Below are positions 37,001 to 43,000 of a DNA stretch of 64,000 nt, one piece after another. The position numbers and the translations under genes are program-made. Origin of the DNA: Thalia democratica (lineage: Eukaryota); the NCBI GenBank assembly GCA_965202585.1, contig OZ241834.1:31124001-31188000 (forward strand), read 5' to 3'. The notes under the pieces are model-generated. The model had not been told where the DNA came from. It saw only the letters and a list, made by a program, of their open reading frames with translations, and ran no database searches. Within the stretch, counting starts at the first letter, position 1. Each line of letters opens with the position of its first letter.

Positions 37001-40000
37001 AACTTCGGCTTCTGCTTCTTCTTTTCGTTGTACATGTCAGCATCATCGTAGTGGTCAAGCTGGAATAGTTAAAGTTTGTTTAAGGTATCGATTTGTATAT
37101 TAAGTATAAAGTTGGTAACAAAAACAGTTTTACAGAGACTAGTTTTAAAACACTTAAAGCAAAATGCACTAATTTAACTTACATTTCATGACTTTTTGTT
37201 TAAAACTTTATGATAGAAAAATAGACAAGTTTTTTATCTATTCAAAATTTTTTTTAAGTTGCTTGAAGAACGTAGAAGCAAACTTAAATAATGAACTGTT
37301 TAATTTCGTTAAAACTTATCAAAAAAAATACTGCTTTTTTAATTTTTATTGTTCTTATTTTATTTTCATACCTTGTGTCTCTCCGAAGACTTCCCCGCCT
37401 CCAGCTGGGACTTCTGACCCGATCCCTTCTTCACGGTGAACCTCCTTCCCTTGTCCTCCTGGACCTTCTGCTCCTGCTTCACCGTCACCTTGCACCTTGC
37501 CAGGTCCCTCCCGTGCTTGTTCACCGCCGTCGCCGTGTACCACGCGTCGTGCTCCCGCTTGCTGGCGCCACCTATCGTCAGCAGCCCGTGACCGTCCACC
37601 CCGTCGATGCTGTAAAAAAAAATAAAGTCTTTAACTTTTAGTACAAATTAAACTATTTTGAAGTTTTAATAATTATACAATTGAAAAAATTCAAAACTAC
37701 TTTTTTTTAACTTTGTTAACAAAAACATAGAATAATGTTTATCAAGACAAGCATTATGTTGCCGAATTTATTTTCAATTATAAATGTAAATTAAGTAGGT
37801 AAACAAATAATGGAACATGTATTCAACGCACAGAAAATCGTGGTTTCCTTCGGGGTGCAGGAGGACGTTGTCGCGCATCCACACGATCTCAGGAGTGGGT
37901 TTTCCCACCGCGAACACCTCCAACCTGATCGTGTCGCCCTCCTTCGCCGTCAAGCTCTGCGGCTTCTCGAGAATCTTCGGTATCTCCGCTCCCTCTTTTG
38001 CTAGATTTTAAACAACAATTCTTATTAATGAAATATAAATTAGGGATTAAAATTTATAACCAACATTGATAAACTTGGATAGATTTTTGCATTGAAGCTT
38101 TTAGCTACAAATTTTTTTAATCAGTTGTTTTTGCTTAAATAAGTTTCGTTTTATTTTGTGCAATATTAATTGTACGTACATAAAGAAAATTGGATAAATG
38201 TATAGAAAAAATTGAATACAAACTGTCTTGATTTTCATCAAGCACAAAACAAAAGTACTTAATAATTAAAATTTTGAGAGTTGAAAATTTATTTTGAGAT
38301 AACTTTTAAAAACTTGAAATATGTATATTTTTTCAACACAAGCGTATTTAATTTTGCTCACCGACGATGGTGAGGTTGAGCGAGGTGTAAGCCTTTCCAG
38401 CCTCGTTCTTGGCGATGATGGTGTACTTCCCTGTGTCGTCCAGCTTGGCCGGGGAGATTATCAAGGACCTGACTCCGTCCTCCTTGATGACCAATCTGTG
38501 ACTGTAATCTTCCTGCACTTCGTTACCTGCATATGAAAAATGTTTAGTTTTTGTGCTTTGTTAAACATATACAATTTATCATAAAGCTAATAAATATTGC
38601 AAATGTGGTTTAAGAATCTATGGCTAAAGTTTTTCTTTGACAAAGTTGGTTACTGTAATGTGTTTTTAATGTTATTAGATATAATAGTCTTTGGATAATA
38701 TTTTCTTAATAGTCAAGCTTTGTTGGTAGATTATATTCTGAAATAAAATAAAAAACAATTACTTTTTAAGTAGCACGTCAAAATTTTGACTTTTTTCAAC
38801 TATCTTTTAAGTATAAATTTTGTACTCTTCAGTTATTAGTTAGTTTTAAATAGTACTTAAATTTCAGCCGCTTTTCAACATTTTTAAAAGTTGTACAACG
38901 TTAATTTTTTTTTCAACTACTAACCAAAATAAATATTCGAATATTTTCCAAAAATTGAGTAAGCTAAAGTCTAAAAATGTTTCGCGGTAAGTCAAGAGTG
39001 CTTAGGCTGGCTCTTAAGCTGTTTAAGTAGTAACATGTACGGATAAACTAGCTATTTAAAGAAAGCGTTTGTTCATTAAAAAAGCCTAGTGTACATTAGC
39101 TATGTCGTTTATTAGTAAAATATTTATCAGTTATAACTAAAAAAACTATACGAAACTAAAACAAGATAAATCTAACTGATAAAAAAGTTTACCTTTGCAA
39201 CTGGTTATACACACGTATACGTTTAAATCTAGCTGTATCCAGCTATGCAAAGCATCTTGACCATTGTTATTTGTTTCAGCTTTAATGTTATTTCTTAATA
39301 AATTTTCTTGTTCCTTAAGACTATTTACTCCCAGTCTAACAGAAGTAGAGCGTTTAAGTATGATATCATTATTTAAAAATTTCTCTTCTTGTTTAAAACC
39401 ATTTTCTCCTAGTTTAATTGAAGATGAGCGGTTAAGTTTGTTATCATTAATAAATATCTTTTCTTGTTCTTTAATTCCATTTGACCCCAGTCTATCCGAA
39501 ATAGAGCGTTTAAGTTTGGTATCATCATTTAATAACTGTTCTTGTTCTTTAATACCATTGGACCCCAGTCTATCCGAAGTAGAGCGTTTAAGTTTGGTAT
39601 CTTTATTGACAAAGTTTTTACTTTCTTCAATATTTTCTGCGTTGTTATTCACTTTGTTTCTTTTCAAACTTCTTCTAAACTTCCTCGGCGCTAGCAGTTT
39701 GTACCGGGACTTGGGAGCAAAGATGCTTTTCTCGCTTTTTATCGACTTCACGAACCCCGAATCGCTAGAATCCGTGAAAGACTCGGATCTCTGTACTTTT
39801 TTGATGTCATCCTCGCTATAGATAATTTCCTGTTCACCGTTTACTTTGACCTTGTTTTCTTTTTCTTTCAACTTGCTGCTTTTAGAGTCTTTTTTCTTTG
39901 AAAATTCACTGAACGACTTGTTTAAGCTGGACCTGATATTTTTTAAACTTTGTGAAAAAGTCAAATTTTCCGCTTCTCGAGTTTTGTTGAGTTTTCGAAC

Positions 40001-43000
40001 CTGCTTCGGAGTTCTAAAGCTTCTTCTGGACTCCGGATTCTTGTTTATGTCGTCTCTTAAAAACGGATTGCTAGACACTCTTTTTAGGTTGTTTAGGCTG
40101 TTCAGTTTACCTTTTTTAACTTTTGCATCTTTTTTGTCACATTGCATATTTATGATAAGTTGAGGCTGGTTAAACCTTACTGCTATTCCATATATGTAGC
40201 TTTCCATAAACTAGTACGACAAAATTTTAAAAAGTTCAAAAATCATTCTGTTTAAAAAGCTACTAGACTTAAAATTCATAAAATACTGTTATAAAATTGA
40301 AAAAAAACACAAACTGGTTTTAAACTACAAATTAACGTTTTACGAATAAACAATACATAAACCTAGCTGTAACCTACAAACTTTAGTTTTTTATATAAAC
40401 AAAAACAATAGTTTACAAATCGAAAGCTGCTGTATAAACAAAATCAAACCGTCGCGTACCGCGTTGCCTCGCAAAACCTACACAAACATTTTTTTTTCTG
40501 GCAAAACTTTGTCGCACAAAGTAATAAACTTGAAACACTTGCCAGCAACAAAACAGCTTTTTTTTGTAAACTTTCTCTCAAAAAAGCGTTCAAGTGGCAG
40601 CGCGAGGGGCTGTTGAAGTTTTATTTTTATTTTTTGTAGTAGCTTTGCCCGCTTTATTTTTGTTTGCTCAAAAGACAGCAAAGAGTCACTTTCCGATTGA
40701 AGATTGCTTTTTGTTTGCTCAATTCTGCTTGCTCAGTCGGTGATAAAATACTTAGACTTGACGCCTTACGACTTTCCTTTTAGTTTTTATGTTAGTCGTA
40801 TTAAGCTACTGATTAACTTATTATCTTTTACTAAATAATCAACTTAAGTAATGACTAGTTTATTTTTATTTTTTTTAATTTTTAAATTTGAATAATTTTT
40901 TTTTTTATAAATATTTAAGTTATGAAGTTATAAAGAAACCCTTAGAATTTAAATGACAACTATTTGAATTAATATATACCGGTACACTTTTTTCTGTTAA
41001 ATTTTACAAAAAAAAAACAGCCATGGTAAGTTTCATTTATTTCTACATTGTCCGTTTCATTAACAAAATTTAATTGCTGAGCTATTTCAACGTTCAATCT
41101 GTCTTATACTAAATAAGCCTTTTACCAACAGTTTTTGAACAATCAAACACCTTTTCCATAAAAAACTTTACTAAAGTCTTATTAAAAAATATTTTAAAAT
41201 AACTTAATAAAAATAACTGCAAAGCATAGTTGTGTTTCAATTTTTTTTTTGTAAAACAGCCATTCATTAAAATGCAGTATTTTTGATTTTTAATGCAACA
41301 AGTGCCATTAACAGCTACTTCAGCTTGAGTATCAAAAGTATATTTACCAGTGTAAGAACAGATTGTTTGCTTAGGTTACTGCAGAAGCTTTTTACAGTTG
41401 TTAAAAACTGTTTGTTTGTCTAAGAAAAAATTTACGAGTAAAAGTTTAAAAATTACGACTTGATAGGTAAATGTGGTAAACAAGCTTTTAAAAGTTCTAA
41501 TGTTTAGTCGAAGTTTTAACATAAATAATTACTTTTGTGCGTTTGTTAAGTTTAAATTTAGTTTATAGCGTTTTTACTTTTTAAGTGTGTAGTTATAAAA
41601 AATTAGTAAACTCCATCAAAATAACCTTTTAAGAAGAAAGTAACTTCAGGCATTGGTCTTCCTGTGACTTTACAGTCGATTCTGGTTGCGTTGCCTTCAG
41701 TGCAAACAATACTGTCTGGCTTTGAAAGAAAACGAGGCCTGTTCGTAAACATACAAAGTTACAGTTCGAGCTTTCTTTAATTTACAAATTAGACATAAAA
41801 CCTGTTCAATTTTTTAAAATTTTAAAGTTGTTTAGTTGCAACTAAAAGGTCTAAATCAAAATTTGCTTTTATCCGTATTTGATTATGTAACAACTCGTTT
41901 ACAAAAACTCACACAAAATTACTTTCAAATCGTTGTTTTTATATTACTCAACATCAAAACAAAAACTCAATTATCAACTAATTAATTTTAGAGATCTTTA
42001 AAAATATATTGCAATTGTAAGCAAATTAAAAAATTAGTTTTATAACTAATTTATTTCAATTTGGTGATTTTTTAAATCTTATGTTTAGCAACAACGGAAA
42101 AGATTAAGCTTTTCAAGGTACAACAAAAGGAACAACTGTTTCAAACTTAAGTTTTACTGAAACTAAGCCTTCAAAAACTAAAACTGATTAATATATCTAT
42201 ATAAGTACTTATCAATACAAATAGAGCATAAATAACTGTTAAAAATGTTTTTTTTTAAATTACACAAAAAAAGGGGATTTTTATCATCTCATGTCTAAAA
42301 ACGCAAAAGTACAACAAAAATTAAAATAAATTACAAGTAGGATTTTTCAATGTCGTTTTGGTAGCTCTTCTCGGTGTACGCTTGCTTGTGATTGGTGGAT
42401 CTCGTCGTCAGGTTGGTCACGTGGGTCAGCGCGGGTGAGTTCGAACTTTCCCGCGCATTTGCGCTCCACTGCACACTGGGCGATTGTCTGGCGACACCCC
42501 TGGATGAAGACCTGCGCTCTTTACGACCCCTGGCGTATTGTAAATGGTAAAAAGTGTTCTGGTAAGAAAGCACAGTGTTTGGCGAACATATTAATTTGAA
42601 TATTTAGAGGATGACATATATTAAAGGTTTAATTATACCAGGTTTCGTAGAAGAGAAAAAGTAGTTGTATTATAAGAGGAACAATAAATTAATTGTTGAA
42701 AGAGGCCCTAATAAACAGCTGTAGTTGAATTTAACCGAAATCTAAAACTTCCAGAGTTAAAAATAAAACGAACAATACCATAAGTATTTAAGATTATTAG
42801 ATCAAGTAGATTAAAAACAAACTTAGCTTGTTAAATTGCACAAAGTAAAAACAAATAAGTGACAAACACAATCATTTAACGTTAAAGTTTAAGTAAATAA
42901 AGGATTATCTTATTATTTTATTAAGATCTACTTTAAAATCAAACAAACCTAATAGATGTAGTTTGCTCGCTAACTGCAGTTTCTTCCTGACTCATTCTAT

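Follow-up and report, generated by a model that had tools for sequence, protein, structure and literature searches.

The subject of this work is a 64,000-nucleotide stretch of the Thalia democratica genome (assembly GCA_965202585.1, contig OZ241834.1, positions 31,124,001 to 31,188,000 of the forward strand), hereafter called the window, in which a titin-like gene runs on the minus strand and a 3.1-kb intron of this host gene, which splits one I-set Ig domain, holds a long open frame on the same strand. Judged by its pattern of substitution, this frame is to be regarded as a genuine coding sequence under strong purifying selection. The best reading of its role, to which we give about an even chance, is that an internal promoter and an alternative first exon would produce a titin without its Z-disc end. 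The coding exon and the conservation of the candidate control block upstream of it are solid; the headed titin lacking the anchor depends on a putative junction, and its case could go either way.

According to this reading, transcription would start inside the intron, from a promoter-like block 200-540 bases upstream of the exon, and the leader would either be retained or be cut off at one or other of the two conserved acceptors that precede the ATG. The phase-1 donor that follows base 39193 would then be spliced to exon 16 of the host gene. The product would be a titin minus all of the upstream Z-disc Ig domains, carrying in their place a 338-residue basic, Ser/Lys/Asn-rich disordered head with one to four copies of a 26-residue repeat, and this head might serve as a phospho-regulated docking or localisation module. 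We infer the promoter activity, the exon 16 junction and any function of the head. The features on which the argument turns are the following (a slash marks a splice site).

39146..40207, minus strand: open frame, ATG at 40207, 353 codons to the stop
39193..40207, minus strand: coding exon, running from the ATG through 338 codons and 1 base to the last exon base, 39193
39187..39192, minus strand: splice donor GTAAAC (AAAG/GTAAAC), GT at 39192-39191, phase 1
41626..41738, minus strand: host exon 15, first I-set half, ending AAAAG/GTTAT at 41626, phase 1
38362..38526, minus strand: host exon 16, second I-set half, starting at 38526 after CAG; in-frame target of the donor of the open frame

The host gene and the position of the open frame

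The host locus can reasonably be taken as titin-like on the basis of its tandem of I-set domains, its disordered exon and its downstream fn3/Ig super-repeats. The best PDB matches of the Ig exons are titin Ig domains, and the order of parts expected of a titin was found: I-set Ig domains at the front, a long disordered exon (1880 residues, within the window), and super-repeats downstream on the same strand, where a 2671-residue exon (L016 1847-9862; G000:C10), 12-22 kb downstream, contains 11 fn3 and 8 I-set stretches. Within this order of parts the open frame falls among the proximal Ig domains, in the front (Z-disc/I-band) part of the locus, ahead of both the large disordered exon and the super-repeats. 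The 2671-residue exon, which lies 12-22 kb before the window start, finishes with a Lys-rich disordered tail and a stop.

In the Pfam comparison, exon 15 covers positions 1-34 of the I-set profile and exon 16 positions 44-90, so that a single domain is cut by the intron, whose G+C content is 25-30%. The RNA evidence came from two marine metatranscriptomes (X5 and X6) of a near relative, used as contigs with an identity threshold of 85%. One of these contigs (X6, record 26) carries both the joint 42335/41738 and the joint 41626/38526, and therefore the usual host message skips the open frame.

The preliminary description of this DNA, made from the letters of the window, had proposed a same-strand frame with its own ATG behind an acceptor, and this was borne out: an acceptor-like TAG/TTTATG lies at 40213-40205, and an in-frame TAG stands three bases ahead of the ATG at 40207. 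Its statement that the exon is no simple cassette holds as well, because entry from exon 15 would be out of frame, and the TAG stands in frame just before the ATG. The donor has the phase of exon 15, phase 1, and the frame therefore reads in frame into exon 16 at 38526, as had also been claimed. The frame has in consequence the two marks of a private first exon, namely an ATG of its own and a reading frame shared with a downstream constitutive exon.

Selection, relatives and product of the open frame

The length of the frame is far outside what the base composition would yield, the longest ATG-initiated frame in 500 shuffles being 137 codons for the composition of the intron and 168 codons for that of the frame itself, against the 353 codons observed. 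The 801-Mb genome contains one other copy, on an allelic contig (C175, at G000:C175:28363-34769; L008/L009). This contig is 91% identical to the window across the whole 3.5 kb compared, intron and exons alike, and over 38300-41800 the divergence amounts to about 9% for introns and about 2.5% for exons. Because the DNA run X1 yields two variant contig series at equal depth, C175 represents the other haplotype. Heterozygosity at the titin region is very high, with both alleles at equal depth in X1.

Beyond the source genome, a search for relatives of the 338 residues, which the preliminary description had recommended, returned one group. The sole matching protein cluster in public collections (P0001-P0004, 299 residues, 67% identical) is encoded by seven DNA contigs of Tara Oceans that belong to a related plankton species, referred to here as the Tara relative. 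Substitutions were counted by the Nei-Gojobori method up to the donor. The ratio of nonsynonymous to synonymous substitution rates (dN/dS) came to 0.107 for the comparison with the Tara relative (261 codons, dS 1.39) and to 0.174 for that with haplotype C175, and every length difference among the window, C175 and the Tara relative was in frame. These values leave little room for the reading that no protein is made and that the frame arose by chance or is decaying, is left over from a transposon, or serves as a poison or cassette exon of the full-length titin message. Such a reading has in its favour that the sequence is low in complexity, A-rich and repeat-containing, with no known domain; it is opposed by the low ratio at so high a dS with all indels in frame, by a length of 353 codons that exceeds every shuffle, by the single-copy state apart from the allele, and by the out-of-frame entry from exon 15 with a stop ahead of the ATG. 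We regard it as close to refuted and give it hardly any weight.

The product appears to be a lineage-restricted orphan outside any described family, as judged from the searches made. No Pfam family matched it at E<=1, the protein Atlas gave no usable match, and no relative beyond the Tara cluster was found among 5.8 billion sequences or in a profile search of 1.84 billion representatives. Short queries designed for fragments or fused proteins (the C-terminal 95 residues and the middle 104 residues) gave no match, neither the window protein nor that of the haplotype had an exact entry in a protein collection, and two scans of Joint Genome Institute metagenomes, one with peptide patterns and one with a conserved 26-mer, were empty. 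A tblastn search of the frame against the rest of the window and L016 also gave no match, and paralogy with other disordered titin exons was rejected for that reason.

The 338-residue product has an isoelectric point of 9.9 and a net charge of +29, with 14.5% Lys, 12.4% Ser and 11.2% Asn. It is predicted to be disordered, the AlphaFold (AF2) predicted local distance difference test (pLDDT) score being 40 with a weak C-terminal hairpin only, and the earlier proposal of a Lys-rich disordered head therefore stands as composition and as prediction. Part of it is made of a tandem repeat detected by Tandem Repeats Finder (TRF):

39295..39628, minus strand: tandem repeat of 78 nucleotides (nt), or 26 residues, 4.3 copies, in frame

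The number of 26-residue copies is four in the window, three in haplotype C175 and one in the Tara relative, and an X5 RNA contig, from a third lineage, omits exactly one 78-nt unit. Each unit bears a basophilic-kinase consensus of the type KLKRS[TS]S. The invariant portions are the first 23 residues, LKRVSSNPFLRDD, FSQSLKNIRSSLNKSFSEFS, a 46-residue block around RSESFTDSSDSGFVKS...RKFRRSLKRNK, and HSWIQLDLNVYVC. Judged by motif only, the repeats and several of the conserved sites fit a basophilic-kinase consensus, and RVSSNP fits a 14-3-3-type site.

On the opposite (+) strand, an open frame of 185 residues extends over 39264-39821 (273 residues in the haplotype, L002 1304-2125). The simplest explanation is that it results from the sense codons being A-rich and poor in stops; nothing independent backs it.

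The donor and the proposed join to exon 16

The window, C175 and the Tara relative share the same donor, GTAAAC, and conservation of both the nucleotide and the protein sequence collapses directly past it. In the 14 codons after the donor, dN/dS between the species is about 1-2. Conservation that ends in this way would be the pattern of a used splice donor, and a variable C-terminal tail could mimic it. The preliminary description had placed a phase-1 donor at this site, and conservation in three sequences now strengthens that assignment. Two features lie downstream of the donor in the intron:

39146..39192, minus strand: read-through tail, 15 codons and a stop, used only if the donor is unspliced
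38971..39064, minus strand: conserved non-coding block, 130-220 nt downstream of the donor of the open frame

The read-through tail is not conserved between the species, and the Tara contigs vary too little among themselves to gauge constraint on it. The block at 38971-39064 has a 65-nt core with about 88% identity to the Tara relative, and flanks near 50%. It resembles a branch point followed by a T-run and an AG, with no conserved exon after it. It showed no significant fold (z-score +0.64) and no Rfam match, and a role as an RNA structure was rejected on these two grounds. A 9-codon terminal mini-exon behind the acceptor AG at 39053-39052 was rejected also, since three of its nine residues differ between the haplotypes and the conserved block runs beyond its stop.

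RNA from the open frame was found in X5, whose contigs cover 39189-39410, 39789-39958 and 40025-40175 at a depth of 3-7 and with 83-90% identity; contigs on titin exons had a depth of 36-61. The other bins of the intron were without RNA contigs, which is weak evidence, as the diverged intron of the relative would fall below the 85% threshold. X5 record 20 can be aligned as far as 39189, which takes it four bases beyond the exon, and it carries 15 further letters that find no match in the intron. Since GTAA opens both the intron (GTAAAC) and exon 16 (GTAACG), an end at 39189 is what a join of the open frame to exon 16 predicts. We take the end of this record as a hint of that junction. The check for RNA junctions suggested in the preliminary description was thus answered in part: contigs lie on the open frame and one of them ends four bases beyond the donor, but the join 39193 to 38526 was not directly seen. 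In the DNA runs X1 and X3, joints with sides of 20-23 letters (for example 40247 to 41810) were set aside as low-complexity noise.

Four observations favour the join to exon 16, namely the position of the donor at the end of protein conservation, the phase match, the shared strand and the four-base overrun of the RNA. By chance, the phase would match that of exon 16 in 1 of 3 cases and the strand would be the same in 1 of 2. We give the reading as an alternative first exon about an even chance.

The upstream conserved region

The region upstream of the ATG was compared across species with the longest Tara contig (L011), which contains 1244 bases upstream of the ATG. Above about 40750 the window and L011 align poorly; they align well between about 40750 and 40400, poorly again down to 40250, and well thereafter, and three features can be delimited:

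40400..40750, minus strand: conserved non-coding block, candidate internal promoter or enhancer
40249..40399, minus strand: spacer, 22-49% identity between the window and L011, possible 5' leader or outron
40211..40250, minus strand: conserved 5' flank, with candidate acceptors CAG (40250-40248) and TAG (40213-40211) for possible cis- or spliced-leader (SL) trans-splicing

Within the block at 40400-40750, identity to the Tara relative in 50-nt windows is 58-78% when gaps are counted, with flanks below about 50%, and the best windows reach 82-90% identity among aligned bases. Against C175 the block is 95.0% identical, compared with 91-92% in the rest of the intron. Its indels are not multiples of three, and we therefore consider it non-coding. 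Neither of the two metatranscriptomes has an RNA contig on it, a result that fits a promoter better than an exon.

The preliminary description had called attention to a GC-richer patch at 40440-40780 as either the promoter or a non-coding first exon with a donor-like GACG/GTTTGA at about 40449. The patch is modestly richer (G+C 0.35-0.37 versus 0.20-0.28), it carries no RNA contig, and of the two proposals the one that survives is the promoter, with which conserved non-coding sequence is consistent. The strongest conserved block straddles GACG/GT and runs about 45 bases past it, and the non-coding exon was rejected because conservation across species crosses the donor. Thus the block at 40400-40750 looks like a promoter or enhancer, and not like a 5' non-coding exon, as far as its conservation pattern can tell. 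By eye, the block contains two GAGCAAACAAAAA (forkhead-like) motifs, two CANNTG boxes and a GCGACGGTTTRATTTTGTTTATACAGCAG block, and a TTTATAC lies about 30 bases before its conservation ends.

Conservation across species restarts at TTAACAG/RATGATTTT, where the CAG ends at 40248, and continues to TAG/TTTATG. An upstream ATG at 40246 (40211-40246, minus strand) is present in both species; its frame of 11-12 codons stops at the TAG before the main ATG, and the peptide of this frame is not conserved. Farther upstream, a SNORD34-like match at 41015-41087 (+) scored 25 bits (gathering score 38, E = 0.12) and is probably due to chance.

Alternative explanations

Several points weigh against a titin headed by the open frame. 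The fusion would open with the second half of an Ig domain only, which is unable to fold as an Ig. A complex prediction for residues 296-338 of the frame together with the half-Ig of exon 16 gave a score of 0.01, which is not evidence either way. The junction of the frame with exon 16 was not directly seen in the metatranscriptome contigs, and the large protein collections contain no assembled protein that joins the head to Ig domains. The shallow contigs on the frame could stem from pre-mRNA or DNA, a possibility that arises because the diverged intron of the relative would miss the 85% threshold. The Tara contigs stop short of the titin exons, and synteny therefore covers the source genome and its haplotype only, for which alone the placement of the frame within a titin intron is shown. 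Finally, the read-through stop has an AATAAA behind it, a signal that a message independent of titin would require. In the window it lies at 39113-39108, 33 nt past this stop, and in the relative the distance is 66 nt, against a background of about one AATAAA per 250-400 nt; its occurrence in both species could nevertheless be chance.

In the most serious alternative, the frame is a stand-alone orphan gene that the titin intron harbours in the same orientation, with its own promoter and intronic polyadenylation and unspliced to titin. Its product would be a free basic disordered protein of 299-353 residues with conserved hydrophobic segments at the N- and C-terminus. This would account for the upstream conserved block of its own and for an ATG that stands behind an in-frame stop, and it would make use of the AATAAA found in both species. 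The gene callers that were applied to the seven Tara DNA contigs gave the read-through form of 299 residues, and the invariance of the N-terminal 23 residues and of the C-terminal HSWIQLDLNVYVC is what the ends of a self-contained protein might look like. A nested gene would also avoid the half-Ig product. However, it does not explain why the tail after the GT is unconserved while GTAAAC is invariant, it requires that phase and strand agree with exon 16 by coincidence, and the X5 match that ends four bases past the donor does not run on as an unspliced message should. We consider this explanation possible, and doubt it somewhat more than we credit it.

It is also conceivable that one internal promoter has two outputs, with intronic polyadenylation, which gives the free protein, competing with splicing to exon 16, which gives the headed titin. 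The evidence for the fusion and that for the stand-alone gene could then coexist. This explanation makes extra assumptions, and we think it improbable.

Comparison with known systems

Private first exons that feed shared Ig exons are known from telokin/KRP, which is made from an intronic promoter of MYLK, and from palladin isoforms. There the private exons are short, and each product begins at the edge of a domain, unlike the headed titin proposed here, whose start would fall inside an Ig domain. Same-strand nested orphan genes offer a different comparison. The open frame resembles them in encoding a lineage-restricted disordered protein within a host intron, with an upstream conserved element and a nearby AATAAA; it differs in that nested genes need no conserved, phase-matched donor, and here such a donor is found where protein conservation ends.

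The closest parallel for an alternative titin start is Cronos, an N-terminally truncated titin without the Z-disc anchor that is produced from a conserved promoter inside an intron of vertebrate TTN and was followed with an isoform-specific probe of 89 nt (Zou et al. 2015, PMC4720518). The statement in the preliminary description that no vertebrate equivalent exists was thus overstated, since Cronos is also an internal-promoter titin without the Z-disc end. The two cases have in common an intronic promoter (here a candidate), a unique 5' sequence, and constitutive downstream exons (here through the putative join to exon 16). Cronos starts far downstream with a short unique sequence, whereas the start described here would lie in the Z-disc/proximal part, inside a split Ig domain, and would use an orphan exon of 338 residues. 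The positions are not the same, and the open frame has no sequence relationship to Cronos. For an internal-promoter isoform of titin, the private exon is unusually long, is an orphan and would enter in mid-domain.

Biological meaning

We tentatively propose, at a little short of an even chance for the proposal as a whole, that this pelagic tunicate reads its titin locus as several messages, in which internal promoters drive young, orphan, disordered head exons, and that in the present case the head takes the place of the whole Z-disc anchor and opens the protein partway through an Ig domain. Such a titin could not be anchored as titin usually is, and it may be phospho-regulated or non-sarcomeric. 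If instead the open frame is a free nested gene, it would be an ordinary, though clearly selected, orphan. The exon merits annotation either way, because homology-guided gene predictors will overlook it. Should the join of the head to exon 16 be real, an internal-start titin that lacks the Z-disc end would have evolved independently in a chordate outside the vertebrates, by means of a young orphan coding exon. This would bear on the ways in which giant muscle genes gain isoforms, and also on the birth of new coding sequence inside introns.

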